Positions 10,128 to 49,983 of a DNA stretch of 64,000 nt are shown in pieces. Position numbers and translations under genes: made by a program. Location: the IMG/VR virus record IMGVR_UViG_3300005537_000001, positions 124,001 to 188,000 of that record; one strand, given 5' to 3'. Each line of letters starts with the position of its first letter. Within the stretch, counting starts at the first letter, position 1. The notes under the pieces are model-generated. The model saw only the letters and a program-made list of their open reading frames with translations. It searched no databases and was not told the origin of the DNA.

Positions 10128-10424
10128 ATGCTTGCCGAATACACATCAATCGAGCGTAGATCACACATCCGCCACCGCGCCCGAACAGACGTTCGCATTC
10201 GAAAATTAAGCGGTCAATCCAAGATGTGCCGAGCTGTTAACCTATCAGCTCAGGGCGTTGGCATCCAAACAGATGACATGGGGCTTCTCAAGGGTGAGAT
10301 AGTCCAGCTTGTTTTCGCTATCAACCTCGGCTCCGTTAGCAAGCTTCACCGTCGAACTGCTCGAGTTGTTCACGTCCGCTCCGGTGTTACCGGATTTTTC
10401 ATGGACGCCTTCGCGGGTAAATGA
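10128..10424 (+). CDS. PilZ-domain (c-di-GMP-binding) protein
   Basis: ERRSHIR (RxxxR) and NLSAQG ([D/N]xSxxG) motifs; early promoter upstream. Confidence 0.8.
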   Translation: MLAEYTSIERRSHIRHRARTDVRIRKLSGQSKMCRAVNLSAQGVGIQTDDMGLLKGEIVQLVFAINLGSVSKLHRRTARVVHVRSGVTGFFMDAFAGK

Positions 10425-11449
10425 TGAAACCAAAGCTTCTAACCAGGGGAGAATTTCGCGACAGCGTCTTTCGCCGCGATGGATCCAAGTGCATCTTCTG
10501 CGAACAGCCCGCGGCAGATGCTCACCACATTCTTGAACGTCGCCTATGGCCAGACGGTGGATACTATCTGGAGAACGGTGCCAGCGTTTGCCCTCAACAC
10601 CACCTCGAGTGCGAGCGAACAACCATCAGCGTTGAAGAGGTTAGGCACGCGGCCAAAATCACTAAGATCTGGGTTCCTCCGCATCTGTACGATGATCACA
10701 TCTACGATAAGTGGGGTAACCCCATCTTGGAAGATGGTCGCCGAGGTCGGGGTGAGCTATTTTTTGACGAGTCGGTGCAAAAGGCTTTGAAAGAAGGAGG
10801 TGTTCTTGATCTCTTTACCCCCTATGTCAAGTATCCGCGCACACTCCATCTCCCTTGGTCTCCTGGATTTACTGATGACGACAAGGTTATGGAAGAACTT
10901 GATGCATTCAAGGACATGATAGTTGTCGTCACCGAGAAGATGGATGGTGAGAATACCACCATGTACCGCGATCACATCCACGCGCGCAGCATCGACAGCA
11001 GAGGTGGAGAAGATAGGGCATGGGTGAAGCAGTTTCACGCCCGCATCGCCCATGAGATACCAGAAGGTTGGCGCATCTGTGGTGAGAACCTTTGGGCAGA
11101 GCATTCCATCCACTATGACAATCTTAGATCGTATTTCTACGGCTTCAGCATCTGGAATGAAAAGAACGTTTGCCTTTCGTGGCATGATACGGTAGAATGG
11201 TTTTACCTTCTTGGTATCGAGCCCATGCCGGTGCTTTACAACGATTTTTGGGATACCGCAAACATCCGCAACCTTGAAAGATATCTGAAGTGGGAGAACA
11301 ACGAAGGTTACATCGTTCGAGTCGCTCACAGCTTTCCATATTCTCAATTCCGCAGAAGCGTTGCAAAGTTTGTCCGCAAGGGTCACGTCCAGACAACGAA
11401 GCACTGGCGAGCTGGGCGATCATTTATTCAAAATGGACTTGCACGATGA
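10421..11449 (+). CDS. HNH domain fused to ATP-dependent RNA ligase
   Basis: CIFC..DAHHI...NGASVCPQHH; KYPRT, EKMDGEN (motif I), EGYIVR, KFVR. Confidence 0.85.
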   Translation: MMKPKLLTRGEFRDSVFRRDGSKCIFCEQPAADAHHILERRLWPDGGYYLENGASVCPQHHLECERTTISVEEVRHAAKITKIWVPPHLYDDHIYDKWGNPILEDGRRGRGELFFDESVQKALKEGGVLDLFTPYVKYPRTLHLPWSPGFTDDDKVMEELDAFKDMIVVVTEKMDGENTTMYRDHIHARSIDSRGGEDRAWVKQFHARIAHEIPEGWRICGENLWAEHSIHYDNLRSYFYGFSIWNEKNVCLSWHDTVEWFYLLGIEPMPVLYNDFWDTANIRNLERYLKWENNEGYIVRVAHSFPYSQFRRSVAKFVRKGHVQTTKHWRAGRSFIQNGLAR

Positions 11450-16870: not shown

Positions 16871-16946
16871 GCCGCTTAAGCTAATCTAGTGAAAGCGTGG
16901 GCCTGAAGAGCCCGATAGCTCGGAGCGTAACCGAGAGGCGGCACCA
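16871..16946 (+). tRNA. tRNA-Phe(GAA)
   Basis: TGGGC-CT GAA GA-GCCCG; CCA. Confidence 0.85.
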
Positions 16947-19285: not shown

Positions 19286-19379
19286 GCCGAGGTAGCTCAG
19301 AGCTGGTCAAAACCCAGCGCCGGTAGAGCGGGTGCCCAACAGCACCGCGTCGTTGGTTCGAATCCAACCCGAGGCGCCA
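19286..19379 (+). ncRNA. tRNA-like RNA: D-loop hairpin insert, 6-nt anticodon loop, GA/GA mismatches in acceptor stem
   Basis: GCCGAGG/CCGAGGC-G-CCA; GCTGG..CCAGC insert; GGTGC-CCAACA-GCACC. Confidence 0.65.
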
Positions 19380-19551: not shown

Positions 19552-19651
19552 GCCGAAGTAGCTTAGAGTGGTGCGCAAAATAAATCCACGTCGGTAGAGC
19601 GTCCACCCGGAAACGTGGAAGACGATGGTTCGAATCCATTCTGAGGCACCA
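19552..19651 (+). ncRNA. tRNA-like RNA paralogous to 19286-19379 (D-loop insert, 8-nt anticodon loop)
   Basis: GCCGAAG/CTGAGGC-A-CCA; GTGG..CCAC insert; TCCAC-CCGGAAAC-GTGGA. Confidence 0.65.
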
Positions 19652-21287: not shown

Positions 21288-21362
21288 GCCGTTGTCGTAT
21301 ATTGGTAATACAGATCCTTGGTAAGGATCAAAACGAGTGTTCGATTCACTCCTGCGGCACCA
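21288..21362 (+). tRNA. tRNA-Thr(GGT)
   Basis: GATCC-TT GGT AA-GGATC; CCA. Confidence 0.9.
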
Positions 21363-21381
21363 ACAAGTAAATAAAAGTACT

Positions 21382-21804
21382 ATGAAAATACTTCTACATC
21401 CAGATCCAACTCTTAGCAAGATAAGCCATCCAATCGAAGAGATTAATGACGGCACTATCGAGCTAATCAACAACATGTTCATTACCATGAACGAAGCTGG
21501 TGGTATCGGTCTGTCGGCAATTCAGGTAGGTGTTGACAAGCAGCTGTTCATCATGAGCATCAACGGTGCCAGCTACATCTTCATCAATCCGGTTATCACG
21601 TGGAGATCTCCAGAAACTCAAACGATCAACGAAGGCTGTCTCAGTCTTCCAGGTACGTTCGTCGACATGACCCGCAGCGCTAAGATTATAGTGAACGCGT
21701 TTGGGGTTGACGGTAAGATATTTGAGGTTGAAGCAACCGGTCTCCACGCCGCGTGCATTCAGCATGAAATGGATCATCTAAGCGGAAAGACGCTGCTCTC
21801 CTAA
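21382..21804 (+). CDS. def: Peptide deformylase
   Basis: GIGLSAIQVG, EGCLS, QHEMDH. Confidence 0.95.
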   Translation: MKILLHPDPTLSKISHPIEEINDGTIELINNMFITMNEAGGIGLSAIQVGVDKQLFIMSINGASYIFINPVITWRSPETQTINEGCLSLPGTFVDMTRSAKIIVNAFGVDGKIFEVEATGLHAACIQHEMDHLSGKTLLS

Positions 21805-22118: not shown

Positions 22119-22456
22119 AACTTCAAGATTTATTCGAGTCAAAATACGCATCGGTTCCTCTATCACAGATACAACCGACAGAAGATTGGCAGGTACCTAT
22201 TGATGATAGGCTTTTAGCATATGTCGATGGTGAAAAGAATACCGTGCCGCGAATTTATGATGACATCAAAAATGGTATTGGAATAAAGCATGCTCTGGAA
22301 GTTTCTAGGATAGCAGATACTTCTAAGAGCTGGAAAAAGACATTTCCACCGAAGCCTGGAAAGGTATATTATTTGCATAATGGCCACCACAGATATGCGG
22401 CGGCTGTTTTAGCAAAATTGAAAAATGTTAGGGTTAGAATAGGAAAAGGAGCATAA
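22115..22456 (+). CDS. ParB/Srx-like domain protein with capsid-targeting-like N-terminus
   Basis: MKLQDLFE; YLHNGHHRYAAA. Confidence 0.7.
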   Translation: MKLQDLFESKYASVPLSQIQPTEDWQVPIDDRLLAYVDGEKNTVPRIYDDIKNGIGIKHALEVSRIADTSKSWKKTFPPKPGKVYYLHNGHHRYAAAVLAKLKNVRVRIGKGA

Positions 22457-22457
22457 G

Positions 22458-23120
22458 ATGAAGCGCATTATAGAAATTAAATCTGCCGAAGGCGGCACAG
22501 ATAGCAAGCTCTTCGCGCAAGATCTTGCCAACGCATACGTAAAGTATCTCACCCGAGTCGGCTGACTCCACCGCCGCATCGATTCGCTGACAATCGAGGT
22601 TGATGGACAGGATCTCTCAGCGCTTCACCAAGAAGCTGGTGGTCATCGAATCCAGCGGGTTCCACCAACCGAACGTTCTGGTCGCACCCACACCTCTACC
22701 GTTACCGTCGCCATCATCAACCCGCAAGAAGCTAAGCTGATTGAGTTCAACGAACGTGACTTCAGGATAGAGTGGTACTCTGGTACCGGTTCTGGTGGAC
22801 AACACCGTAACAAGCACCAAAATTCTTGCCGAATATTTCATACCCCAACTGGGACGGTTGCCACCGCACAATGTAGGAGCCGAGAAAATTCCTTGAAGGA
22901 AGCGAAGGTAAATATCCTTGAACGTCTAAACGCTCAGCTCTCCGGAGCAGCCCATCAAGCACTATCAATGGATAGGAAAACTCAGATGGGTTCCGGAGAG
23001 CGGGGTGACAAGATCCGCACCTACCGCTTCCAAGACAATATCGTCAAGGATCACAACACCGGAAAGCAGGCGCAAACCGACAAGGTGATGGCTGGAAACT
23101 TTCAACTGCTTTGGAGATAA
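22458..23120 (+). CDS. RF1-type peptide chain release factor (lacking domain 1) with in-frame TGA at codon 36
   Basis: MKRIIEIKSAEGGTDSKLFAQDL..Y..RVG*LH...EAGGHRIQRVPPTE.SGRTHTS...GSGGQHRNK...GSGERGDKIRTY; PxT and GGQ motifs; TGA 22563-22565. Confidence 0.9.
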
Positions 23121-25100: not shown

Positions 25101-25203
25101 AGAGATGTCGTATAATGGTATTACCCCGGTCTCCTAAGCACTTTCCTAAAGAGAGTTTTTAGGAAAACCGATGACGGGAGTTCGATTCTCTCCATCTCTG
25201 CCA
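25101..25203 (+). tRNA. tRNA-Trp-like gene with a 29-nt insertion in the anticodon loop
   Basis: AGAGATG/CATCTCT-G-CCA; removing 25135-25163 gives CCGGT-CT CCA AA-ACCGA. Confidence 0.7.
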
Positions 25204-31328: not shown

Positions 31329-31718
31329 AAAATTTCTTTGCTCAACGTGATCACCAAAGTTCCTCCACCGGAGCAGCTTGGTTAACAATCATGTACGTTA
31401 GTGGATGGGTGTTGTTACCCCTGCAGGGTTCAGCACGCGCAAACGGTGTCAAGGCTGTTCCACCAAATTCTTGAATGGTTGCTGGTTAGAGAAAATCAGA
31501 TAGTGCTGACTGACCGTCAGATAGTTGCTGGTTAGAATGACCAGATAGATTACCGCATAGTCGAATCAAGCGGTGTAGGTAGGCACAATGGGAATAGTCC
31601 CATCGTGTAATTTGTTCGAAACCTTCGGGTTAGACTCATGATTTTCGGATCATGTAAACTATCGAAGTTCCCAACTGCAACATTTGTTGGGGAATTTTGT
31701 TGATCACGTTGAAATTTT
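31329..31718 (+). ncRNA. Giant (~390 nt) Y-RNA-like structured RNA immediately upstream of Ro60
   Basis: TCAACGTGATCA.CAAAGTTCCTC / GGGGAATTTTG.TGATCACGTTGA long-range stem; CAC-C-GGA/TTTGTT helix; GCAG(C)TTGG/CCAACTGC; internal UUCG hairpins. Confidence 0.65.
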
Positions 31719-31758
31719 GCCGTCGCTAGCAACGATAGCCGCTATAGGAGATCATATC

Positions 31759-33393
31759 ATGGCTAAGAAGAACTCAATCTACATCAACACGATGTCTACT
31801 AATCCACGTACGACCGTTACACCACAGACTCAGGCATTGCCTGGTCGTGAAGCCGAAATGGTTGCAAACTCCGCGGGTGGAGTTACGTTCCAACTTGACG
31901 TTTGGGGACAGCTCGATCGCTTCCTAATCCTCGGATCAGATACACCAACGTATTACGCTTCAGCGAAGACGCTCACGAAGCAAAACGGTGCGAACGTTCT
32001 CAAGGCTATCAAGCTTGATGGTACAAAGACCGTTAACCGCATCACCGAAATCTCTCTTGGCGGTCGCGCTCCGAAGAATGATCCTGCCGTGTTCGCCTTG
32101 GCGCTCTGCGCCATTCATGGTGATGAAAACACCGTTAAGGCCGCCTACGCGGCTCTACCGAAGGTTTGCCGAATCGGCACTCACCTGTTTCAGTTCGTCG
32201 CGGCGCTCGATGAAATTGGCAAGTGGAACGCAGCCGCAAAGCGCGGTGTTGCAGCGTGGTACACCGGCCGAGGTGTCGACAAGCTGGCAGTTCAGCTCTT
32301 GAAGTACCAGTCTCGCGATGGCTGGGCGCACCGCGACGTCCTACGGCTCGCGCACGTCAAGCCGGCTAATGATGTTCAGTCTGCCCTGTTCCGCTACGCG
32401 GTTAAGGGCGCCGAGGGACTTGAACCGAACACTGAGGTTCCTCAGCTGCTCGTTGACTTCGAGAAGCTCAAGACCGCCGACGCGAAAACAACGATCAAGT
32501 TGATCGAGTCTAACGACGACATCACTTGGGAAATGATCTCGACCGAGCATCTCAAGGATCCAAAGGTCATGGCCGCGATGATCCCAAACATGGGGCTGAC
32601 CGCTCTTATTCGCAAGCTTGGTCAGCTGACCAGCATCGGCGTCATCAAGCCGTTGTCTTCGGACATGTCGGTCGTTCTCAATAAGCTTACCGACACTGAG
32701 GCCCTAAAGGGTGGTCGCGTTCACCCACTTCAGCTCCTAATCGCGCTGAAGCAATATTCTGTTGGACATGGCTTGAAGGGTAGCTTGGTGTGGAAGCCGG
32801 TGGCGCAGGTTGTTGACGCGTTGAATGATTCGTTCTACGAGGCGTTCAACTTCATCCCAACGACCAATGAGGGTTACCTGTTTGGTCTTGACATCTCCGG
32901 TTCAATGTTCGGTGGTGAGGTATCCGGCGCGCCGGGTATGTATCCAGCCGAAGTATCAGCGGTTATGGCTCTTGCCGTCGCGAAGCGTGAGAACAACTAT
33001 GAGATGTTCGGATTCGACAAGACTCCGAAGCCTTTGAAGATTTCTCCGTCGATGCGCCTGGATACTGTTATTGAGGCGATGAAGAATCTCCGCTGGTCAG
33101 GTGGTGGTACTGACTGCTCGCTGCCGATGCTGTACGCGCTTGATCGTGGATACAGTGGCATATCTGCCTTCGTTACTTTCACCGATAATGAAACATGGGC
33201 CGGCAAAATGCAGCCAGTAGAAGCATTGGCTCGTTACCGTAACAAATACAACCCAGCTGCAAAAATGATTGTCTGCGGTATGACTGGAACCCCATTCACT
33301 ATCGCTGATCCAAAAGATCCGGGGTCACTTGATCTTGTTGGATTTGACAGCTCTTGCCCTCAGTTGATACAGAGCTTTGCCAGCGGGAAATAA
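31759..33393 (+). CDS. rsr: Ro60/TROVE-domain RNA-binding protein (Rsr)
   Basis: NSAGG..F, LDRFLILG, KYQSRDGWAHRDVLRLAH, vWA DISGSM, GGTDC, TDNETW, LDLVGFD. Confidence 0.95.
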   Translation: MAKKNSIYINTMSTNPRTTVTPQTQALPGREAEMVANSAGGVTFQLDVWGQLDRFLILGSDTPTYYASAKTLTKQNGANVLKAIKLDGTKTVNRITEISLGGRAPKNDPAVFALALCAIHGDENTVKAAYAALPKVCRIGTHLFQFVAALDEIGKWNAAAKRGVAAWYTGRGVDKLAVQLLKYQSRDGWAHRDVLRLAHVKPANDVQSALFRYAVKGAEGLEPNTEVPQLLVDFEKLKTADAKTTIKLIESNDDITWEMISTEHLKDPKVMAAMIPNMGLTALIRKLGQLTSIGVIKPLSSDMSVVLNKLTDTEALKGGRVHPLQLLIALKQYSVGHGLKGSLVWKPVAQVVDALNDSFYEAFNFIPTTNEGYLFGLDISGSMFGGEVSGAPGMYPAEVSAVMALAVAKRENNYEMFGFDKTPKPLKISPSMRLDTVIEAMKNLRWSGGGTDCSLPMLYALDRGYSGISAFVTFTDNETWAGKMQPVEALARYRNKYNPAAKMIVCGMTGTPFTIADPKDPGSLDLVGFDSSCPQLIQSFASGK

Positions 33394-37420: not shown

Positions 37421-39379
37421 ATGAAATTGAGTTCAACCTTCACTTCATCTTTCGCAAGAAAGTTTGCATCCAACGCCGAGATGCCCATTCTGGATTATCT
37501 CGATCTCTGTAAAACCGATAAGATGGTGTATGCCAACGCGGCAGAACGAATTTTAGCTTCCATCGGTGAACCAACGGTAGTCGACACTTCAAGCGACCCT
37601 CGCCTATCACGCATTTTCAGCAACAAGAAAATACGTACCTACGAGGCGTTCAAGGAGTTTTACGGAGCTGAAGAAGCCATTGAGCGCATCGTCGCCTACT
37701 TTACGGCCTTCGCTCAGGGGCTAGAAGAATCAAAGCAGATCCTTTATCTCAAGGGACCGGTTGGTGGTGGTAAAAGTTCTTTGGTCGAGCGGCTTAAAGA
37801 ACTAATGCAGACATATCCGATTTATGTTTTGAAGGATCCTTCAGAGAAAAATGCGGAACTGCAGCTCTCTCCTCTGTTCGAAAGTCCGCTCGGCCTTTTT
37901 AACAAGCTTGAGCATGGTGAAGAGCTGGAAAAAGAGTATGGCATTTCTCCACGCTATCTCAACACGGTTTCTTCAGGCTGGGCGCAGCAGAAGCTCCAGG
38001 AATTCGGTGGTGATTGGACTAAATTCAGCGTTGTCAAGATTTATCCAAACAAGGATTCCCAGATTGGCATCATGAAGGTTGAGCCAGGCGACGAGAATAA
38101 TCAAGACGTTTCAGTTCTTATCGGCAAGACCGATATTCGCAAGCTGAAAACTTATCAGCAAAATCACTCATACAGCTACAGCTACTCCGGTGGTTTAAAC
38201 CGCACGACCCAGGGTTTCATGGATTTTGCCGAAATGTTCAAGGCGAACATTAAGACGCTAAATCCGCTCTTGATGGCGACGCAAGAACACAACTACAACG
38301 GTACCGAAAATATCCCAGCGATGCCGTACATCGGCATCATCTGCGCCCACTCAAACGAGGCAGAATGGTTCAAGTTCCGAAACGATAAGTCAAATGAGGC
38401 CTTCCTAGACCGCGTTTACATCGTCAACGTTCCATACTGTCTACGAGTTAGCGAGGAGCAGAAAATTTACGAGAAGATGCTCCGAGGTTCAAGCTTGAAG
38501 AATGAGGCGTGCGCCCCTGAAACCCTGAAGGCGCTGGCCGAGTTCATGGTCCTCACGCGCCTGCGTGAACCAGAAAACAGCACTATCTACGCCAAGATGA
38601 AGGTGTATGACGGTCAGAACGTGAAGGATACCATGCCGATGGCTAAGCCTTACGAGGAGTACCGCGAGGCTGGTGGTATCGATGAAGGTATGACCGGCTT
38701 GTCTACCCGCTTTGGCTTCAAGATTCTTTCAGCGACTTACAACCTACGTCCGGAAGAAATTCAGGCCAACCCAATCGACCTCATGTACGTTCTGGAACAA
38801 GCGCTAAAGCGCGAGCACCTGCCAAGCGAAGCTCAGGAACAGTACCTTGACTTCATCAAGTCGTGGGTGCAGCCGCGCTACTTCGAGTTTATCGACAAGG
38901 AACTTCGCATGGCGTACCTCGAGTCCTACAGCGAGTTTGGTCAGACGATGTTCGAGCGCTACTGCTTGTTTGCCGAATCATGGTGCGATGACGTTACCTG
39001 CCGCGACCCAGAAACTCACACGCTTTTGAACCGCGAGCACCTCAACACTAAGCTTGAAGAAGTAGAAAAGGCAGCTGGCATTCCAAACGCGAAGGATTTT
39101 CGCAACGACATCGTGCACTACGTTCTTCGCTACCGCTCGCGCAATGAAGGCAAGATGCCAAAATGGAATGAGTACGAAAAGATCAAGGTCGTCATCGAGA
39201 AGAAGATGTTCTCAGCTACTACCGAAATCATGCCAATCGTTTCATTCACACCAAAAGGTTCAGCTGAAGAGCAGAAGAAGCATAACGACTTTGTCGCTCG
39301 CATGAGAAGCAAAGGATATACTGACAGACAGATTCGCACGCTAGTAGATTGGTGGTGTAACAACCGGAAAGCCTCGTAG
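37421..39379 (+). CDS. yeaG: PrkA/YeaG AAA+ serine kinase family protein
   Basis: QILYLKGPVGGGKSS, EPGDENNQD, EMFKA, HSNE.EW, NEAFLDR. Confidence 0.95.
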   Translation: MKLSSTFTSSFARKFASNAEMPILDYLDLCKTDKMVYANAAERILASIGEPTVVDTSSDPRLSRIFSNKKIRTYEAFKEFYGAEEAIERIVAYFTAFAQGLEESKQILYLKGPVGGGKSSLVERLKELMQTYPIYVLKDPSEKNAELQLSPLFESPLGLFNKLEHGEELEKEYGISPRYLNTVSSGWAQQKLQEFGGDWTKFSVVKIYPNKDSQIGIMKVEPGDENNQDVSVLIGKTDIRKLKTYQQNHSYSYSYSGGLNRTTQGFMDFAEMFKANIKTLNPLLMATQEHNYNGTENIPAMPYIGIICAHSNEAEWFKFRNDKSNEAFLDRVYIVNVPYCLRVSEEQKIYEKMLRGSSLKNEACAPETLKALAEFMVLTRLREPENSTIYAKMKVYDGQNVKDTMPMAKPYEEYREAGGIDEGMTGLSTRFGFKILSATYNLRPEEIQANPIDLMYVLEQALKREHLPSEAQEQYLDFIKSWVQPRYFEFIDKELRMAYLESYSEFGQTMFERYCLFAESWCDDVTCRDPETHTLLNREHLNTKLEEVEKAAGIPNAKDFRNDIVHYVLRYRSRNEGKMPKWNEYEKIKVVIEKKMFSATTEIMPIVSFTPKGSAEEQKKHNDFVARMRSKGYTDRQIRTLVDWWCNNRKAS

Positions 39380-39392
39380 CCCAGGTTGACAG

Positions 39393-39947
39393 ATGTTAGG
39401 GCAATATTACTGCTACATATTTCGTGATCCCAAAACCGAGATTCCTAGATACGTTGGCAAGGGAGTGAATGATAGAGTTTGGACTCACATAGATTATCCA
39501 TCTAACACTCGCACTGATAGGATGCTAGTGAAGAGACATAGGGAAGGATACTCTTGTGTACCCGAAATTATCTACTGCAAGAATGAGGAACAGGCTTTCA
39601 GTTTAGAGATGTGGTTCATTTGGAAATATGGGCGTGAAGATCAAGGTCGAGGTACACTTTTCAATCTCACAGATGGTGGAGAAGGTTTGACAGGTATCTC
39701 AGAAGAAACTCGCCAGAAGATGTCAATAGCTAAAACTAGATATCTCACTGGTAGAAAACACGATGAAGCAAGACGCAAGAGACAAGGGCAGAGGATGAAG
39801 GGTATTCCGAATGTCGCAGCGAGCAAGAAGCTTCAAAAGCGTTGCACTGTAGATGGTGAGAATATCTATCCATCTGTTAGAGATTTAGTGGCAGCACTAG
39901 GTCATGGTAAAAATGGAGCACGATCTCCAAGTTTGAGGTTCATATGA
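39393..39947 (+). mobile_element. GIY-YIG homing endonuclease with NUMOD3-like motif
   Basis: YCYIFRDP..RYVGKG..R..H; NLTDGGEG..SEETRQKMS. Confidence 0.85.
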
Positions 39948-40104
39948 ATAATGAAGTAACTAAAACAGCGATTGCGGGTCTGGCCGCATCCATCAACCGC
40001 GTAGCGGAACAACTAGCCGTACAAAATAATCAGCAGGTTTTGCAGAACAATCTTCTAAGACGAATCGCTGACGCTCTTGATCAACAGAATTCAACGGTGC
40101 GCTG

Positions 40105-40428
40105 ATGGGCTACTCACATGAAGAATTAAGTGAAATTTGGTGGGCCTCTACAAAGCCCGCGCTGGCGCCATATGCGGATCATTACAAATTTGGAATCGAT
40201 GCGTGCGGGGCTTTGATAGAATGGGCAGCATATGGTAAGGCTGATTCAGATAATCCCGGCAACACAGCATGGGAAGTAGCGCACAAGATCGCCATTGCAG
40301 AGGGTGGAACAGACAATAAAAACAATCTTATAGCCCTTCAGTGGACGAATAATCGCAGACAGGGCACTCGCCCACTTCGAGTTTTCCTTGAAGCCGTGAG
40401 CGAGCATATGACTTGGAAACGCAAGTAG
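40105..40428 (+). CDS. HNH-like endonuclease
   Basis: WEVAH...GGTDNKNNLIALQWTNNR. Confidence 0.7.
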   Translation: MGYSHEELSEIWWASTKPALAPYADHYKFGIDACGALIEWAAYGKADSDNPGNTAWEVAHKIAIAEGGTDNKNNLIALQWTNNRRQGTRPLRVFLEAVSEHMTWKRK

Positions 40429-40686
40429 TGCGAATCAATATAAACCAACTTAACACAAACCCACAGGAAATTGAACCAAACGATTTGACAATTTCCGAAA
40501 CAGGGCCGTGGAGCGTGAGCGTTGGAAAGTCTGAGGCAGGTACCTTGAAGGTATGCCTTCAGTCGGATGATTTTCACCACGACGTCGCTTTGTACATCAC
40601 TGGAGATTTCTGCGATAATGACCAGCGAATCGAATATGCTCGACTTCTTGCCGATCGAATGAATCGTATGCCGAAGGAGTAAAGAC

Positions 40687-42105
40687 ATGTCTTTCATCCT
40701 CATCGATAGAAGAAAGGCGGGTAGGGGAAAATCATCTTCAAACCGTCAAAAGCTCATTAAGCGAATAAAGGGCTTCATCAAGGCATCTTCCCCGCAAAAT
40801 ATTGGCAAATTCGGGGTTTCTGGTCAGAACAACCCAGCCCCTGGGGCTGGTGGATCCAGCCCTGTTAAGGTTGCCGGCGCGGCTCTTGAGGAACCGCACT
40901 TTCACTATTCTAGGGATGGCAATCATACAGCAATTATCATTGGCAATCAAGAGTATGATCGCGGTGATGAAATAGAAATACCATCCGATGAAGGTAGCTC
41001 AAGTCGGGGTGGTCCCGGAGATGCCGGTGAAGACGATTTCATAGTCTCTGTCGCGCGCGACGAATTTTTGGATCTTTTCTTTGAGGATTGCGAGCTACCG
41101 AATCTAGTCAATGAGAAGTGGACTGAGAGGCTTGATAATAAAACCCAACAAGCTGGGTTTTCTACTATTGGTTCTCCGGCTCAGCTAAGCGTAATCCGCA
41201 CCTACAAGCAAGCTCTCGGACGCTCAAGCGCGATGGCAGCTTTGGTGGAGGATGAAAAGGAAGAGCTGCTAGAAGAGCTTGCGGCAATATTTGAAAATTT
41301 AACCGGCGCTAAGCATGGCACTCCTGAAGAACTACTCCGGGTGCTCAACATCCACATGACGATTAACCTAATGCAGGATGAAGTCGGTAAACGAATAGCT
41401 TCGATCCTATCCCGTCTCAAGGAGCTAGATGACGAGATTGATTTCCTGGATGGGTTCGATTCTTCCGATCTTCGCTACCGCAAGAAGGAAGCTAAACCTC
41501 TCAAGACGGTAGACGCCGTTCTCTTCATGCTCATGGACATTTCCGGCTCCATGGATGAAACAAAGAAGACGATAGCCCGTCGTTGGTTCGCGCTGTTCTA
41601 CGCGTTCATTCGCCGGCGCTATCCAAACACCGAGCTTGTGTTCATCGCTCACACCGATGAAGCGTTTGAAATGTCCGAAAATGATTTCTTCTCCACGCGG
41701 GTCAACGGTGGAACTACCGTATCTCCAGCGCTGAAGATGATTAATACCATAATCAAAGAGCGCTACGATCCGAATGAAGTCAACATCTACATATCCCACG
41801 CGTCAGATGGTGATAATTGGGATGAGGACAACAGCGTCGTCATCGATGAAATGATCGGTGAGGGCAACCTCATGAAGAAGATCCAACTGTTCAGCTACGT
41901 TGAAGTTGGTAAACCGATGGGAACCGGCTGGTTTAACGTTGGAGCTGGAATATCAGGAACTACTACGAGAGAAGATACCGGGTTGTGGGTAGCCTACGAT
42001 AAGGTTCGCGATGGGGTAGTTGATAAGAAGATGACCCTGTCGATAATCGAATCGGCGGATGAATGCTACCCAGTGTTTCAGAAAATTTTCAAGAAGAAAA
42101 AATAA
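40687..42105 (+). CDS. yeaH: YeaH/YhbH (vWA) protein
   Basis: LIDRR..KSSSNRQK, DLRYR, LMDISGSM, GGT.VS, HASDGDNW. Confidence 0.92.
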   Translation: MSFILIDRRKAGRGKSSSNRQKLIKRIKGFIKASSPQNIGKFGVSGQNNPAPGAGGSSPVKVAGAALEEPHFHYSRDGNHTAIIIGNQEYDRGDEIEIPSDEGSSSRGGPGDAGEDDFIVSVARDEFLDLFFEDCELPNLVNEKWTERLDNKTQQAGFSTIGSPAQLSVIRTYKQALGRSSAMAALVEDEKEELLEELAAIFENLTGAKHGTPEELLRVLNIHMTINLMQDEVGKRIASILSRLKELDDEIDFLDGFDSSDLRYRKKEAKPLKTVDAVLFMLMDISGSMDETKKTIARRWFALFYAFIRRRYPNTELVFIAHTDEAFEMSENDFFSTRVNGGTTVSPALKMINTIIKERYDPNEVNIYISHASDGDNWDEDNSVVIDEMIGEGNLMKKIQLFSYVEVGKPMGTGWFNVGAGISGTTTREDTGLWVAYDKVRDGVVDKKMTLSIIESADECYPVFQKIFKKKK

Positions 42106-43613
42106 TGACGCAACCACTTATTACCTCGCGCACCGATTGGAACGAAGGACTAATCAATAACATCACCAAGATTATTGAGGAAGTAGCTCATGAGGAGCTT
42201 GACATCGATCCAAGCAAGGATATATACCCCAACCAGATCGAAATAATTCCAGCTGAAATGATGATCGACGCGTACGCGTCTGTTGGTATGCCGGTAAACT
42301 ACAGTCACTGGTCATTCGGCAAAGAGTTTCTCAAGAATTGGACAAAGTACCAGAAGGGTCGAATGGGACTCGCGTATGAAATCGTCATCAATTCTAACCC
42401 GTGCATCTCATATCTCATGGAGGAAAACCCAGCCATAACGCAGGCGCTGGTTATAGCGCACGCCGCGATTGGCCACAATTTCGTCTTCAAGAATAACTTC
42501 ATGTTCAGGGAATGGACAACTCCAAGCTCCATCATTGATTACATGATCTTCGCCAAGAACTACATCAAGGAGTGCGAGGAAAAATATGGTGAGGACGAGG
42601 TTGAGCAGCTGCTCGATGCCGCTCACGCCTTATCGACGCACGCTGTTGATAAGCAAAAGCGAAAGCACAAGAAGAAAAAGACAGAAGAGGACAAGCTGAA
42701 GGAAGAAGCCAAGAAGGCCGATGATAAGCACAAGGACATGGACATCATCATCCAAACCACGTCGGTTGTAGCCCCTGAAAAGGAAAAGACCGATCAAGAC
42801 TTGGACCGGGTTAACGACGAGGAAAATATTCTCTACTTCATCTACAAGCACGCCCCAAACATGCCCCAGTGGAAGAAGGAAATCCTGCGCATCGTGTACA
42901 AGATTCAGCAGTACTTCTACCCGCAGGGACAAGACAAGACGCTAAATGAAGGCATGGCGACCTTCACCCACTTCCACATCATGGACACTCTGGAGCAGCG
43001 CGGAATAATTTCACCGGATGCTCAGCTTGCTTGGCTGCACCTTCACTCCAACGTAGTGTATCAACCAAATATGCGCTCGAAGCACTATGACGGTAGCTTC
43101 AACCCGTACGCCTTAGGCTTGGATATACTTCGAGAGATAAAGAGAATTTGTGAGTATCCAACTAAGGAGGATCAAGAATGGTTTCCTCACCTAGCTGGAG
43201 AGGATTGGAGAAAGCAAATCAAGCTCGCGGTTACTGACTATCGAGATGAAAGCTTCATCGAACAATTCTTGACGCCTAATCTTATGCGAAAGTACAACAT
43301 GATGAGCGTCAATTATACGGGATCCAAGGGAATCGTTACCGAAATTTCTGACGATATCGGCTATCGCAACATGCGCCGCTCCCTTGCCGCGCAGTACAAT
43401 CCGATCAATTTTATTCCAGACATCGTGGTTAGCGGTGCGCGGATGAGAGCGGATAGAATGCTGACTCTCGAATATAGACCGTATCTTGGCAGATCACTGC
43501 ATGAAGCTACTGCTAAGAAAACGCTGGCACACGTTAAGGCGCTATGGGGATATGACGTTGAAATAGTAGAAAATGCCGGTGACGACGTCTACAGAGTTCT
43601 CTACAGAACTTAA
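42105..43613 (+). CDS. ycgB: SpoVR/YcgB family protein
   Basis: YPNQIE, GMP..Y.HWSFGK, GLAYEIVINS.PC, YFYPQ...NEG.ATF, NPYALG. Confidence 0.93.
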   Translation: MTQPLITSRTDWNEGLINNITKIIEEVAHEELDIDPSKDIYPNQIEIIPAEMMIDAYASVGMPVNYSHWSFGKEFLKNWTKYQKGRMGLAYEIVINSNPCISYLMEENPAITQALVIAHAAIGHNFVFKNNFMFREWTTPSSIIDYMIFAKNYIKECEEKYGEDEVEQLLDAAHALSTHAVDKQKRKHKKKKTEEDKLKEEAKKADDKHKDMDIIIQTTSVVAPEKEKTDQDLDRVNDEENILYFIYKHAPNMPQWKKEILRIVYKIQQYFYPQGQDKTLNEGMATFTHFHIMDTLEQRGIISPDAQLAWLHLHSNVVYQPNMRSKHYDGSFNPYALGLDILREIKRICEYPTKEDQEWFPHLAGEDWRKQIKLAVTDYRDESFIEQFLTPNLMRKYNMMSVNYTGSKGIVTEISDDIGYRNMRRSLAAQYNPINFIPDIVVSGARMRADRMLTLEYRPYLGRSLHEATAKKTLAHVKALWGYDVEIVENAGDDVYRVLYRT

Positions 43614-46600
43614 ACTACCTCTGTAATCTTCAGATAGCTGCCAATCAGCACCAAAAATCCATTTGTGTTTGATGAATTTTCAGCGAACGAAAGGGCAAAT
43701 GTCCCGCCCGTCGTTACGCGCGCGATACCGGTAGCGCGAATGACGTTGTCAGCACCTTGTCCGGTGGTTGAAATAGTTGTATATGTTACCGACGCACCAG
43801 TTACCGACGTTTGAAGGGCTGCTAACTGCTGCGTTTGAACGGTTCCATTTACTATTCCATCTACCAGCGCCGAGCCGTAGATAAATGCACCACCGCCGGT
43901 AAGGCTTGCATTAAACTTTAAGCCACCTGCCGCTCCGCCCGCGTCAGCGGCCTGTACAAAAAGCAATATTTCGTATTGAAATGATCCAACTCCAATCGAT
44001 GCCGTGAGGTGAGTGCTGGAAGTTAGAGTTGTTGAATTATACGTTTCATTTGCAGACACGCCCTTAATTATCGGGAGGCCCGCAACAGTAACGGTAGTCC
44101 ACTGTGGAGGTGCACCGGATCCCTGTGAGGTTAGAACTTGACCGGATGTTCCAAGCGGCGTAGTAGAAGCTGGTAAGCTCCAATCTCCAGCTGGTCCGAT
44201 TGTCAAGCGCGTTGTTGAGGCGGTAGTTCCCGTTTGGAGTATCAGCGATCCAGCTGTTCCAGTTGGAGACGTACCTGTTTGAATAGTTACGCTACCTCCC
44301 GCACCAGATGTTACGCCGTTGCCGCCCATCACCGTGACGGCGCCGCCGGCATTTCCTGAACCGACGGCATTGTTTCCAGCTACCGTTGCCGTACCACCAG
44401 CACCGTTGGTTGGAAAGCCACCGATCAATCGCGCGTTACCGCCGGGTCCCGACGTCGTGCCACCAGACCCACCAAGCACCGTAGTTTGGCCACCAGTTGC
44501 AGTTGATCCACCTGTACCACCCTGAACAACTACAGAACCTCCAGTATTCGCGCCCGTTCCGCTGCTACCGATAAATGATGTAGTAACACCGGTAGTTGTT
44601 CCAGTTACTGCCTGAAGCGTAAGTCCGGTTGCAGCTGTGCCAACGTTGAGAGTTGTACCAATACTTGTTGTTCCAGAAACGGTAAGAGATGCTAACGTTC
44701 CTACCGAGGTAAGCGATGATGTAACAACGTTAGCCGCAAGCGTTGTTCCAGTGAGCGTACCGGCAGCGGCGGCGGGTGCGCCGGCCCATGTTGGAGGACC
44801 ACCAGCAGTTACGGTGGTCAACACCTGTCCAGCTGTTGCTGCTACCGCTCCAGCTCCCATGAGCCACTGTCCTGAACCATCTATCTGAAGGCGTTGAACA
44901 AGCGCGGAACCAATAGGGGCAGTCTTGAAGATGAGAGTACCGGGGGTACCTGATGGTGATGGTGAGGTGCCACCTTGAATAGTTACGCTACCTCCCGTAC
45001 CAGCGGTGGAACCATTTCCATTACCGGCAGAAATTGATATGTTTCCCGCCGTAAGTCCGCTACCAGCAGTTAAGCTTACTGAACCACCACTACCTATGTT
45101 GTTGCCACCGTTATTGCCTCCGGATCCAGCCGTTAGCGTTATACTACCACCGTCACTTTCTGTAGTTCCACCAACCGTATTACCACTACCGGCATTAACT
45201 ATGAAGCTAGAACCAACACCACCGGATCCACCAGCACCTTTGCCACCGTTAAACGTAAAATTAGCATTTGAAGTGGGTGTTGTAATTTGATTTGAAGCAT
45301 TAGGAATGGTAAATGTTATTGATCCTGCTGCCGCGTTAGCTGCGGTGTTTCCAGTATTGGGCGTACCTGATGTAAATTGCAGAGCGCCGCCGCCAACCTG
45401 CGTGCTGTTAGCTCCCAAAATGGTTATAGTTGGTGGTGTCGTGGTTACGGATGATGGCGCGGTAATGGTTGGAGAGACTGCTGTCGTTCCAAACGTCAGC
45501 GTTGCTGTACCAGCCGTCCAAACCAATCCGGTATCTGACGTAAACGCGCCGCCCGTGTTGTACTGAATTGCTCCAGTACCACCAGTCGTGCTAGCTGAGG
45601 TGCCGTTGGTCCAAGTTGGAGGATTGCCCGAGCCCTGAGATGTTAAAACTTGATTTGTTGACCCAGCTGACCCAGCAAGCAACCATGACCCATTTCGATC
45701 GATCGTTAGGCGTGAAACTGATGATGTTGTTCCTGTTTGGAGATCTATGATTCCTTGATTGGCACTTCCGGTACCAGTTGGAACCAAACCACCCTTTAGG
45801 ACTATATTTCCAGGTAGCCCGGTTGCTGGAGCTGCGCCACCGGTAAGAATTACGTTTCCGGCCGCGCTCGCAGTCGCGGTTGTGCTACCACCAGTTAGAG
45901 TTACCGCTCCACCAGCCGCACCGGTACCTGTTGAAACACCGCCGGTAATAGATACTTGACCGGCTATCGCTGAATTGGTAGCAGCACCGCCGGCTATCGT
46001 GACTGCTCCAGACGTGCCGGCACCGGTAGCGGTACCCGCGGTTATGCTTATCGCGCCACCAGCTCCAGATGTCGCGTTGCTACCAACTATTGCAAGCGTT
46101 GTTCCACTGGTTGTACCGGCATTCGCTGAAATAGTTGGTCCAAGAGTTCCGGTACCCATCGCGTGAGTTTGGGTTGTATCATTCCACGTGAAGTCGCTGG
46201 TACCAGTCAACACGCCGCCAGCGCTTCCATATCCAATCTGCGTAGCAGTTAGAGGCGTAGTTGTTACGGTATTTGCGATAGTTACCGTACCATTGTTGGA
46301 CTGGGTTATGGAGATACCAGTTCCAGCTACAAGAACCGGATCAACGGTGTAGTACTGATTGGTTGCAATAATGTCTACGGTTATCCATGAATTTGCCGGC
46401 ACGCTGGTAGGCGCACCGGTTGCTGAGCCATCGATCGCGCCACCATTTGCCGGATAAACGTTTATCGCAGTTCCAGTTCTGTTGATGACGGTTATCTCAC
46501 GCCCAATGTTTGCGACTGACGTAGTTGGAAGAGAGACTCCTCCGCTGCCGGTAGTAACAACGTTTGTATCCGCGGTAAGAACGGTTGCCGTTGCTAAAGT

Positions 46601-48169
46601 TGTTCCGGCGGCCGCTACCGTAGGTAGCGTGTTAAAGCTTAAACCACCTCCCATCGTTAGCGACGTTAGGGTACTTACCGACGTTAGCGAGGATGCGGTT
46701 ACTCCTGAGTTAAGGGTGCTACCAGTTAAGTTGGCGGCGGGTACCGATCCAGCTGAACCTCCAATGCTCAGCGCGGCGGCGGTGCCGCTAAAATTAGTAC
46801 CGGTTAGCGTTGGAGTTGTTGTCCAAGTTGGCGTACCAGCTATTTCTTGCAGCACACCGGTGCCCTGCGCTAGAAACGTTGTAGTTCCAGCTCCACTTTG
46901 AAATGGAATGCTGTTAGCAGCCCCACCAGCGATGTTGGTAGCGGTTGTAGCGGTAGAAGCCGACGCAACAGTTCCGGTGACGCTTACCGTTACGGCACCA
47001 GCCGCACCAGACACGGAGATGTTGGTACCAGCGGTTATCGACGTAACGCCGGTATTGTTTATCGTATTTCCGGTTATGGAGATACCCGTTCCGGCTACGA
47101 ACGTACCCGACCCGCTAAACTGGACGTAGGTAATGCTGGTTGTACCAACCGTGATGGTCGTGGTATTGTTGTTTACCCAACCGGTTGTTGACTGCGTTGT
47201 TCCACCGTTGACGTATACAGCTTCACCTTCTATCTGCGTCCCCGTTGTAGAATCAGTAGATCTCGTCCACGCGCCGGAAGACGATATGTAGATGCCATTC
47301 TGCGTTTGATTGGTTTGGTTCTTAACTAGAACGCGCGACGATGATGTTGTAACTCCATCGATAGTCTGCTCACCTGATAGCGTGATGTTGACGATGGTCG
47401 CGCAGACGACTTCCTGCTTCCAGGAAAATCCAGCTATCACCGCGTCAACGTAATTCTTGGTGGCGGCACCCAAGCCAGTCGTTGGATCTGCCGCGAGAAT
47501 AAGTGGGCCGGTAAGAGTTCCACCGGTGAGAGGTAGGTTTCCAGATGCTGTTCCGGTAAGCGCTCCAACAAACGTCGTGGACGTAACCGAGGTAAGTCCA
47601 GCTATGGTGGTTGCTGTAGTTCCAAGTGAGATGGTGGTCGAACCTACCGTAACGCTGCTGTTTGACAGCGCGCCGTTGGGAATGCTCGTAAAGTTAGTGC
47701 CGGCAAACGTTGGTGCTGCACCAGAATTTATGTCTTGCGGTAGCGATAGAGTTACGGCACCGGTTGAAGCTGACGCGATGATTTGATTTGCGGTACCGGT
47801 TATGCTGGTTACCGAGCCACCAGCACCAGCCGCTGCCCATGCAGGCAGTCCGCCAACCATAGTTAGCACAAAACCGTTAGTTCCAGCCGCTATAAATCCG
47901 GTAGTGCTTACGCCAGTTTGAAATGGAATGCTTCCCGCCGCTCCACCAGCGATTGACGTTGAAATTATTGATGGATCGCTATCTTGAACTGATCTATTCC
48001 AGGTGCTCGTCGATGTTGCAAAAACGTACAATCCCGACTGAAATGAACCGCCAGGAATTATGTAGAAAAGTTGACCATCGTCCGGTGATTGTGGGAAGGT
48101 AAGCCCGGTGTCAACGACACAATTTCTAATGTTAGAACCTTCAAATAATGAAATACCATCAATGTGCAT
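43610..48169 (-). CDS. Long Gly/Thr-rich tail fibre-like protein (1519 aa)
   Basis: AATKNYVD, RVLVKNQT..QNGIY, repeated GQVLTSQGSG.PP.W and GG.V.I.GG repeats. Confidence 0.85.
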   Translation of the reverse strand: MHIDGISLFEGSNIRNCVVDTGLTFPQSPDDGQLFYIIPGGSFQSGLYVFATSTSTWNRSVQDSDPSIISTSIAGGAAGSIPFQTGVSTTGFIAAGTNGFVLTMVGGLPAWAAAGAGGSVTSITGTANQIIASASTGAVTLSLPQDINSGAAPTFAGTNFTSIPNGALSNSSVTVGSTTISLGTTATTIAGLTSVTSTTFVGALTGTASGNLPLTGGTLTGPLILAADPTTGLGAATKNYVDAVIAGFSWKQEVVCATIVNITLSGEQTIDGVTTSSSRVLVKNQTNQTQNGIYISSSGAWTRSTDSTTGTQIEGEAVYVNGGTTQSTTGWVNNNTTTITVGTTSITYVQFSGSGTFVAGTGISITGNTINNTGVTSITAGTNISVSGAAGAVTVSVTGTVASASTATTATNIAGGAANSIPFQSGAGTTTFLAQGTGVLQEIAGTPTWTTTPTLTGTNFSGTAAALSIGGSAGSVPAANLTGSTLNSGVTASSLTSVSTLTSLTMGGGLSFNTLPTVAAAGTTLATATVLTADTNVVTTGSGGVSLPTTSVANIGREITVINRTGTAINVYPANGGAIDGSATGAPTSVPANSWITVDIIATNQYYTVDPVLVAGTGISITQSNNGTVTIANTVTTTPLTATQIGYGSAGGVLTGTSDFTWNDTTQTHAMGTGTLGPTISANAGTTSGTTLAIVGSNATSGAGGAISITAGTATGAGTSGAVTIAGGAATNSAIAGQVSITGGVSTGTGAAGGAVTLTGGSTTATASAAGNVILTGGAAPATGLPGNIVLKGGLVPTGTGSANQGIIDLQTGTTSSVSRLTIDRNGSWLLAGSAGSTNQVLTSQGSGNPPTWTNGTSASTTGGTGAIQYNTGGAFTSDTGLVWTAGTATLTFGTTAVSPTITAPSSVTTTPPTITILGANSTQVGGGALQFTSGTPNTGNTAANAAAGSITFTIPNASNQITTPTSNANFTFNGGKGAGGSGGVGSSFIVNAGSGNTVGGTTESDGGSITLTAGSGGNNGGNNIGSGGSVSLTAGSGLTAGNISISAGNGNGSTAGTGGSVTIQGGTSPSPSGTPGTLIFKTAPIGSALVQRLQIDGSGQWLMGAGAVAATAGQVLTTVTAGGPPTWAGAPAAAAGTLTGTTLAANVVTSSLTSVGTLASLTVSGTTSIGTTLNVGTAATGLTLQAVTGTTTGVTTSFIGSSGTGANTGGSVVVQGGTGGSTATGGQTTVLGGSGGTTSGPGGNARLIGGFPTNGAGGTATVAGNNAVGSGNAGGAVTVMGGNGVTSGAGGSVTIQTGTSPTGTAGSLILQTGTTASTTRLTIGPAGDWSLPASTTPLGTSGQVLTSQGSGAPPQWTTVTVAGLPIIKGVSANETYNSTTLTSSTHLTASIGVGSFQYEILLFVQAADAGGAAGGLKFNASLTGGGAFIYGSALVDGIVNGTVQTQQLAALQTSVTGASVTYTTISTTGQGADNVIRATGIARVTTGGTFALSFAENSSNTNGFLVLIGSYLKITEVV

Positions 48170-48196
48170 TAGAAATCTCCGACATGTTTAGCATAT

Positions 48197-48574
48197 TTAG
48201 CGTAATGTGGGCTTTGGATTGTCGTAATCGTCTATCTTGTAGAACAGGCTTGTTTCTACCTCGGTGCTTGCAACCATGTCTTCCCATCTGTCAGGAAGAC
48301 CGTTGATAAACATGTTGATGATTTTGGTGTTATCTTCCAAGGCGCAAATTTCATGCTCCTTGGTAGAATCAAAATCATCAAACAGCTCTCCTGCCCGCGC
48401 TATTTTTTGCCAGTCGCGGCCATAGACGCATACCGAACCCTTGAGCACGACAATGTTGTGAAAGTGCTGCTCAATCTTGTGGGCATGCATTCTAATTCCA
48501 GAACCCTTTTGCATGAAGGTGTAGATGGGTCCACAGATGATACCCGATTTGTAGAAATCTATCTTGATGCGCAT
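48197..48574 (-). CDS. Cupin-fold protein in the tail-fibre operon
   Basis: MHAH...H..VVLKGSV...HEICALEDNT. Confidence 0.7.
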   Translation of the reverse strand: MRIKIDFYKSGIICGPIYTFMQKGSGIRMHAHKIEQHFHNIVVLKGSVCVYGRDWQKIARAGELFDDFDSTKEHEICALEDNTKIINMFINGLPDRWEDMVASTEVETSLFYKIDDYDNPKPTLR

Positions 48575-49983
48575 TATGTGTATCTGATAACGATGTGTCC
48601 AACCGTACCATCAGCTGGGTCGGTAGACAGAGATCTGCCATCTCCACCTGGATTGCCGGTACCATTGGTTCCTACGATAGCTGCTCCACCAGCTCCAGGA
48701 ATGCAGATAGATCCGGCGGTGCCTGAATTACCAACTAAGTTTGCGAGGGTGCCACCAGTTCCAACCGCGCCCGCCGCGCCCGCCGTTCCACCATGACCAG
48801 CTCCTGGTGAATTACCGCCAGCACCGCCAGGAGGTCCAGTCATCGTTGTAAATCCTGTAAAAGTTCCAGCTGTAACGCTTGACTGCAATCCAGCTCCACC
48901 CACCGTGCACGATAGCGTGTGGCCGTTCTGCGCTGAAACAGAGTAGGATGATCGCGAGTACCCACCAGAACCTCCACCTCCACCAGCATCAGAGGTGCAT
49001 ATGTTGGTAGAACTGCCGCTACCGCCGGTAGCGCCACCTCCCCACACCTCGATGACCATAGTTGTCGCACCGCTTGGGATAGTTTGGGTTGTGGTTCCAG
49101 CCGCGCTAAGGGTAACGGTTGATGGCGTGAACGGTACGGTTGTGTTTGTTACGCTCCACGTAACCGTGTTTGACGTCGCGCTGGTGTGACCATCAGATAC
49201 AACGCAGTGCATCGTGCCGGAAGTAACGCCACCGTTATCTGCTGCCGTCGCTGTTACGGCTGTAGCTGCTGAGCTTGGCGCGGTTAGGGTACCAGAACCA
49301 GATAAAATTGACCATGAGAATGAATAGGTTCCAGTTCCATTAGCTCCAGCTACCGTAGTTGAAGATGTTGTTCCAGAACCAGATGGCGCGCCTAGCGCGC
49401 CAGAAACCGACACGTTACCAGGCTGGGTACCAATAGTTGTCGCAATGTACGTGTTTGTAATCGTCCAGCTTGCTGAATTTGTGTTGGTCGTACTATTTCC
49501 ATCCGACACGGCACACGTGATGGTTCCGCTCAATGATGAGTTTGCACCAGGTGCCGCCGAAACGCTGGCGACGGTAGACGTTGTGGATCCATTCGTCGTG
49601 TTGGTATTCAGCGTTCCACCAGCCCCGGTTATTGACCAGGTGTAGGTGTAGCCGCTTTGCTTACCCTTTGATCCGACGGTGCTGGTGGTATTAGTTGTTT
49701 GCGACGCGCTTGCTGGCTGTGAGCTTGAAACCGAAATGTTTGAAATACCGGCGGCAACAACGTTAGTCGAACCTATAGTTGCAAATCTTGAGGCAATGTC
49801 GGAGCCACCCTGATCAAATCCAATTCCGCCTGCAGCTGAACCAGAACCGGCCGCGGCGAAGATTGCATTTAGATCGCTGTTTCCAGCCGTAAATCCAGTT
49901 GCGGCGGCTTGAGGCCACCCGGCGATGAGCGGCGCTAGAAGCGAAGCTAAATCTGTACCTGCATGGCGAAAATTGCTTGTCAT
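48574..49983 (-). CDS. Gly-rich tail/receptor-binding accessory protein
   Basis: Ig-like YTWS repeats; IEVWGGGA..GGGGGSGGY glycine-rich domain. Confidence 0.75.
   Translation of the reverse strand: MTSNFRHAGTDLASLLAPLIAGWPQAAATGFTAGNSDLNAIFAAAGSGSAAGGIGFDQGGSDIASRFATIGSTNVVAAGISNISVSSSQPASASQTTNTTSTVGSKGKQSGYTYTWSITGAGGTLNTNTTNGSTTSTVASVSAAPGANSSLSGTITCAVSDGNSTTNTNSASWTITNTYIATTIGTQPGNVSVSGALGAPSGSGTTSSTTVAGANGTGTYSFSWSILSGSGTLTAPSSAATAVTATAADNGGVTSGTMHCVVSDGHTSATSNTVTWSVTNTTVPFTPSTVTLSAAGTTTQTIPSGATTMVIEVWGGGATGGSGSSTNICTSDAGGGGGSGGYSRSSYSVSAQNGHTLSCTVGGAGLQSSVTAGTFTGFTTMTGPPGGAGGNSPGAGHGGTAGAAGAVGTGGTLANLVGNSGTAGSICIPGAGGAAIVGTNGTGNPGGDGRSLSTDPADGTVGHIVIRYT

Follow-up and report, generated by a model that had tools for sequence, protein, structure and literature searches.

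A domain-1-less RF1-type release factor of a jumbo phage with a conserved UGA inside its gene

How can a release factor gene be expressed when a stop codon lies inside it, and why should a phage keep such a stop? The question is raised by an RF1-derived gene at 22458-23120 (plus strand) of the window, a stretch of 64,000 nucleotides which is part of the 368-kb jumbo phage contig IMGVR_UViG_3300005537_000001 from IMG/VR and is identical to that contig over this locus. The gene consists of 35 codons, an in-frame TGA and a further 184 codons followed by TAA. A sequence-only reading of the window had described it as an RF1-type factor without domain 1 whose frame continues through an in-frame UGA, and this observation is confirmed with exact coordinates. 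The start codon ATG (22458-22460) is preceded at a distance of 6 nt by a strong Shine-Dalgarno sequence, AAGGAG (22446-22451, plus strand), and the TAA of the upstream gene ends at 22456. The frame meets TGA at 22563-22565, followed by C (UGA-C), and then stays open to the true terminator TAA at 23118-23120. The neighbours are peptide deformylase, a 113-aa ORF and a ferritin-like protein.

Both pieces of the gene match release factor profiles in register. The N-terminal piece (22458-22562) hits Pfam PCRF positions 103-132 and aligns to Thermus thermophilus RF1 residues 107-138. It supplies the first strand and helix alpha5 of domain 2, including the AEGGTD tip at 22485-22502, the element that reads the first stop codon base in RF1. 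The body (22566-23117), which comprises the rest of domain 2/4 and domain 3, hits PCRF 150-194 and the RF-1 domain. In NCBIfam the prfA profile scores 150 bits, prfB 96 and prfH 48, however all are below the equivalog cut-offs (150/146 bits against 400/423 for RF1, 48 against 167 for PrfH). The PPT tripeptide, a PxT-type stop codon “anticodon”, lies at 22662-22670 within GGHRIQRVPPTE, and the GGQ peptidyl-tRNA hydrolysis motif, invariant in the family alignment, at 22794-22802. PPT is present in at least 90% of the clade. Alignment with cellular RF1 and RF2 shows that about 115 N-terminal residues (domain 1, which contacts RF3 and the L11 stalk) and about 20 C-terminal residues are absent compared with the cellular RF1 of about 360 aa, and that the stop aligns with Trp of three cellular RF1s and with Phe of an RF2. 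The residues around the recognition loop (Q before the tripeptide, its first P and third T, TE after it, and HTST) match RF1 and not RF2. The family consensus (GGHRIQRVPPTE..GRVHTST) departs from RF1 at two points, as Asp replaces Glu at the alpha5 tip, where both RF1 and RF2 have Glu, and Pro occupies the middle of the tripeptide, as in SPF of RF2. The AlphaFold2 model of a full-length family member (P0033, 65% identical to the body of the window's gene) has a mean pLDDT of 92.6, shows the N-terminal piece forming a helix at residues 15-35, and finds its best PDB matches in open, ribosome-bound RF1 (TM 0.92, rmsd 2.0 Å), whereas closed crystal forms score about 0.55. Domain 1 is held to be dispensable for release and codon specificity but needed for RF3 (PMC1586002, citing Mora et al. 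2003).

The stop is neither a sequencing error nor the mark of a pseudogene. Among 103 distinct homologous genes collected from IMG/VR, ENA, JGI and Logan contigs (49-100% amino acid identity), which come from independent samples and assemblers, TGA occupies this codon, codon 36, in 103, which is far beyond chance, even though the counts include related sequences and are not independent events. The flanking codons vary, and the true terminator is TAA in 94 of the 103. Database proteins of 222-224 residues with W at the site could be taken as evidence for TGG, however they are code-4 gene calls on short contigs and their DNA has TGA. Nei-Gojobori dN/dS over 25 disjoint pairs is 0.14 upstream and 0.15 downstream of the stop, so both parts are translated and constrained alike. 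The two conditions which had been named beforehand as fatal to the sequence-only reading, TGG in homologues and relaxed selection downstream, were thus both examined and came out in its favour. In GenBank no cultured phage relative was found above 40% identity, and the hits obtained are host contamination or other huge-phage release factors.

Genome-wide reading of TGA as Trp is also rejected for the window. TGA is the commonest stop of long plus-strand ORFs in the window (36 of 78), it ends 125 of 440 long ORFs in the flanks of relatives, and full-length Pfam domains end at TGA stops. Long open frames at 43.6-50 kb, apparently interrupted only by TGA, are the antisense of three minus-strand fibre-like genes, and the same-frame pair at 58561/59116 is two separate genes, since the CofD domain starts at residue 3 of the second. 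No other gene with an in-frame TGA was found in the window. There is no tRNA with a TCA anticodon in the window or among 652 tRNA/tmRNA predictions in the flanks of the related release factor loci (a count in which contigs fetched twice appear twice), and the extra tRNA-like genes found only by Rfam are neither tRNA-Trp nor opal suppressors. Nevertheless, as the window covers only 64 of 368 kb, an opal suppressor or an RF2 gene elsewhere in the genome cannot be excluded.

By which route could the ribosome reach the body of the gene? A frameshift in the window's gene is rejected, because the homology continues in frame 0, the other frames close at once, and the codon before the stop is GGC without an internal Shine-Dalgarno sequence. 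Re-initiation is unlikely, since no in-frame ATG, GTG or TTG occurs before 22893, which is past GGQ, and in the family the first such codon after the stop is not conserved (median 50 codons, range 4-148). No readthrough-stimulating RNA structure or SECIS-like element was found: RNAalifold returned 0 pairs around the stop in 32 diverse members, and the fold of the window's own sequence is no better than shuffles (MFE z = -0.37). Relatives at 39-50% identity (P0126, P0129 and P0178) have TGG at the site, so Trp is the ancestral and presumably the inserted residue. This agrees with E. coli data, in which TGA is the leakiest stop, is replaced almost always by Trp, and is made stronger by a following T (PMC11126739). 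None of the 103 internal stops is followed by T (A 76, G 18, C 9), whereas 15 of 36 ordinary TGA stops in the window are, although the absence of T may partly reflect which amino acids are allowed at the next position.

The wider family extends this picture. In a search clustered at 50% many viral representatives have only 160-190 residues, that is, they are calls which begin after a gate. At the DNA level, members at 37-46% identity (loci L091, L160, L163 and L164/165) have TGA at the same codon, while the distant loci L089/L090 have TGG there and an independent TGA four codons downstream. Some close relatives have lost the gate (Ala in P0136, Leu in P0161, TGG in P0126), therefore it is not indispensable. 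On a quick maximum-likelihood tree all members with TGA at the Trp position fall in one well-supported subclade (SH-aLRT 98) with gate-less members interspersed, so the gate is old and is occasionally lost or regained. In a sister subfamily, around P0150, 53 of 81 distinct loci have the N-terminal piece one frame behind the body and need a +1 frameshift. The junction is CTT-T-stop in 53 of 53, with GGAGG placed 3 nt upstream in 25 of them. The site, GGAGGGG-N-CTT-T(GA/AG/AA), with the consensus C-GGAGGGG-T-CTT-TGA-C, follows the prfB design, and CTT stands at the very position of the window's gate. Two independent assemblies agree base for base over 617 nt. The stop in these sites is TGA in 34, TAG in 16 and TAA in 3, with the same PPT loop in all three groups, and the subfamily is also RF1-like by profile. 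A further 11 loci carry two in-frame TGAs.

It is considered, with moderate confidence, that the gene is functional and that its expression is gated by programmed readthrough of UGA as Trp. In this view ribosomes start at the strong Shine-Dalgarno site and after 35 codons meet UGA, where most would be released by host RF2, leaving a useless 35-residue peptide, while a fraction would decode UGA with tRNA-Trp(CCA) by C-A wobble and go on to make the 220-residue factor. The yield would then be set by the contest between RF2 and UGA-reading tRNA-Trp, rising when RF2 is scarce or busy and UGA termination is slow, or when a good UGA-reading tRNA-Trp is plentiful. Some related phages encode a tRNA-Trp(CCA) right next to the gene, and several of these have the 4-bp anticodon stem that raises UGA readthrough in E. 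coli (PMC13092985), which is a lead in favour of this view and no more. The most likely task of the product is extra RF3-independent termination at UAA and UAG, supplied when the termination capacity of the cell runs short; as this phage ends nearly half of its genes in TGA, relieving RF2 of UAA work would help. The analysis itself establishes that the gate is conserved, that both halves of the gene are under selection, that Trp is the ancestral residue, that related genes carry a prfB-like frameshift gate at the same codon, and that no alternative route to the body was found. The readthrough mechanism, its dependence on RF2, release activity and codon specificity, and the physiological purpose are inferred from sequence alone. 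It should be added that a factor strictly specific for UAA and UAG offers no evident reason for control by a UGA sensor, and that the mixed stops of the frameshift subfamily fit a factor reading all three stops, or a generic termination sensor, better than a specific RF2 sensor.

The main rival is true autoregulation as in prfB, in which the factor itself would recognise UGA despite its RF1 ancestry, terminate at its own gate and limit its own synthesis. This remains possible but is less likely. The family repeatedly evolved gates built on a stop codon at one site, including the exact prfB design, which in prfB is autoregulatory (PMC12421855), and TGA, TAG and TAA gates coexisting with an unchanged PPT loop are expected if the factor reads all three stops; the Asp at the alpha5 tip and the Pro in the tripeptide point the same way. 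On the other hand, apart from that Pro the recognition loop is RF1-like, P-x-T reads only UAA and UAG by the tripeptide rule (Ito et al. 2000), and profile scores favour RF1 by more than 50 bits. A readthrough gate at a Trp codon can only be TGA whatever the specificity, so the window's clade says nothing on this point. In its boldest form, which is tentative, this reading would mean that jumbo phages carry a large family of RF1-derived, domain-1-less factors autoregulated through recoding gates at one fixed codon, by UGA readthrough in the window's clade and by CUU-UGA/UAG/UAA +1 frameshifting in a sister clade, because the factor reads all three stops. It would be the first omnipotent bacterial-type class I release factor and the first autoregulatory recoding in the RF1 lineage.

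It is also conceivable, though unlikely, that the gate is a timer and not a sensor, opened at a set stage of infection by a phage-encoded UGA decoder, either a tRNA-Trp(CCA) with a 4-bp anticodon stem or a tRNA(UCA) elsewhere in the genome, as part of a staged change in decoding. A tRNA-Trp(CCA) gene lies immediately upstream of the release factor gene in loci L004, L024/L154 and L089, and at least four of 13 distinct phage tRNA-Trp genes near the release factor gene have a mismatched 27:43 pair, a form which raises UGA readthrough in E. coli and occurs in 8.9% of bacterial tRNA-Trp genes (PMC13092985). Code-change modules of suppressor tRNA, TrpRS and RF1 are described in TGA-recoded Jade phages (bioRxiv 10.1101/2021.08.26.457843), and the loci with two in-frame TGAs would need efficient decoding. 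However, the window holds no tRNA-Trp, most release factor loci have some other tRNA or none next to them, and a strong UGA decoder would extend many proteins in genomes where TGA is a frequent genuine stop. Enrichment of tRNA-Trp beside the gene is only suggestive, with 17 tRNA-Trp among the 652 predictions and adjacency in two or three lineages. A passive attenuator, in which the leaky stop merely keeps a potentially harmful factor at a few percent of its initiation rate, is doubtful. It is consistent with the strong Shine-Dalgarno sequence, with the fitness cost of release factor overproduction (PMC12421855) and with UGA readthrough of a few percent being normal in E. coli (PMC11126739), nevertheless a weak ribosome-binding site would do the same without wasting initiations, and the conservation of TGA in 103 sequences, the independent gate four codons away and the elaborate Shine-Dalgarno-stimulated frameshift site at the same codon all point to selection for the stop codon contest itself. 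Artefact or decay, to which only the splitting or code-4 translation of the gene by gene callers could point, is practically ruled out by the evidence above.

The interpretation given by the sequence-only reading is partly supported. The RF1 type, the absent domain 1, the intact PxT and GGQ, the TGA at the Trp position and the dependence of the full protein on decoding of that UGA, hence on RF2 versus a UGA-reading tRNA-Trp, are all borne out. Its claim that the factor cannot terminate at its own gate is not shown, as it rests on the tripeptide rule only and is weakened by the mixed gates of the sister subfamily. The proposed cross-wired circuit, in which UGA readthrough would yield a factor closing a UAG-gated pth/HD operon, is not supported: Pfam scans of 68 ORFs and ORF pieces across the window returned no pth and no HD gene, and no gene with a convincing in-frame TAG was found. 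Two tRNA(CUA) genes do exist (199-272 and 2682-2759), and antagonism between these amber suppressors and the factor is no more than a possibility.

Huge phages are known to encode RF1, RF2, tmRNA and peptide deformylase (PMC7162821), but recoding control of release factor synthesis has been a textbook peculiarity of RF2. The prfB gene is likewise interrupted early by an in-frame UGA (codon 26 in E. coli, codon 36 here), so that output depends on how slowly the stop is read; there the event is a +1 frameshift on CUU-U preceded by an internal Shine-Dalgarno sequence, a device shared by relatives of the window's gene, while in the window the frame continues in frame 0 and the RF1-derived factor, judged by its PPT loop, should not read UGA. 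A 2025 survey of more than 12,000 bacterial genomes found no programmed recoding in prfA (PMC12421855). An early in-frame UGA read through by a near-cognate tRNA when the factor is short is the design once expected for RF2, yet Atkins et al. 2016 state that no RF2 gene has it and that the RF1/UAG counterpart is unknown (PMC5009743); here it occurs in a phage RF1-type gene, with UGA instead of the RF1-specific UAG. Literature searches, in a library that does not cover all journals, found no earlier description of recoding in phage RF1 genes. The giant virus release factor gene needing both readthrough and frameshifting (PMC5009743) and the readthrough/NMD autoregulation of plant eRF1 (PMC5397192) also involve stop codon recoding, but concern eukaryote-type factors which read all three stops in eukaryotic hosts. 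In phage Qbeta UGA is decoded at low efficiency by tRNA-Trp to give the longer A1 protein, however both products are functional there, whereas here the short one is a 35-residue fragment. The phage RF1 of code-change modules (Borges et al., bioRxiv 10.1101/2021.08.26.457843) is associated with tRNA genes and UGA decoding as Trp, but those modules are written in standard code and serve genome-wide recoding with a tRNA(UCA) and a TrpRS. PrfH and ArfB/ICT1 are GGQ factors that lack domain 1 and act without RF3; PrfH lacks a PxT/SPF-type loop and is paired with RtcB, and ArfB lacks the codon-reading domain altogether, which the present protein keeps.

What is new is that a viral RF1 lineage carries both designs, an in-frame UGA and a prfB-like frameshift site, at the same codon and in hundreds of sequences, which suggests that RF1-type factors also use recoding control. 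It gives a natural system for asking what a stop codon gate senses when the gate codon and the predicted specificity of the factor do not match, it raises the possibility of a bacterial-type factor with broadened stop codon reading, and under the favoured reading it would show that phages tune host termination capacity and not only tRNA supply. In practice, annotation pipelines currently split these genes or translate them with code 4, so that the family is recorded as 160-190-aa fragments.

In a sister subfamily of short phage RF1-like genes, found at the related loci L161 and L170-L263 (for example L172:1400-1520), a +1 frameshift is needed at a prfB-like site (GGAGGGG-N-CTT-T-stop), and the stop, which lies at the same codon as the gate of the window's gene, is TGA in 34, TAG in 16 and TAA in 3 loci. 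Another subfamily (loci L206, L216, L218, L226 and L236-L243) is characterized by two conserved in-frame TGAs located eight codons apart (..NH[TGA]REGFVSL[TGA]ITGKG..). Such an arrangement would need efficient UGA decoding, however the flanks of these loci show no clear genome-wide recoding. In one subclade (loci L023, L029, L035, L037, L051, L061, L067 and L081/L082) a permuted tmRNA gene lies immediately downstream (just 3') of the gated RF gene, linking the factor to ribosome-rescue functions. The window has no tmRNA.

Phage tRNA-Trp(CCA) genes lie next to the RF gene in the related loci L004 (2799-2871), L012 (1480-1553), L024 (2607-2680), L120 (1509-1584) and L089 (456-529), and in four of these five, with the exception of L089, the top pair of the anticodon stem is mismatched, a form which has been reported to read UGA. 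The window comprises two tRNA genes with a CUA (amber-reading) anticodon, at 199-272 and 2682-2759. The first has an A27-G43 mismatch giving a 4-bp anticodon stem, whereas the second has a 4-bp stem with a 9-nt loop. No target gene with an in-frame TAG was found in the window. Four further tRNA-like genes (19286-19376, 19552-19648, 25101-25200 and 16871-16943) were found by Rfam but missed by ARAGORN: two are paralogues with a 24-29-nt insert in the D-arm and odd anticodon loops, one has a 31-nt hairpin insert in the anticodon loop, and one is an ordinary GAA tRNA. In and around the tRNA array there are also genes for a Ro60/TROVE-vWA protein (31684-33393, preceded by a 497-nt gap), an RNA ligase (10421-11449) and a peptide deformylase (21337-21804), suggesting an RNA repair and translation-maintenance region.

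The phage also carries, at 37421-43613 of the window, a gene trio of PrkA kinase, DUF444 (YeaH-like) and SpoVR-like proteins, which is a bacterial stress operon. The only sizeable minus-strand block is located at 43610-49983 and comprises genes of 1519, 125 and 469 aa, of which the two large ones are rich in Gly/Thr/Ser/Ala and fibre-like, and their antisense mimics long TGA-interrupted ORFs on the plus strand. At least seven otherwise unrelated or unannotated ORFs of the window, starting at 19751, 20543, 21927, 22115, 25540, 27835 and 28564, begin with the same motif, MK-[LVI]-x-[ED]-L-[FLM]-E, which may be a shared N-terminal signal or indicate a paralogous family.
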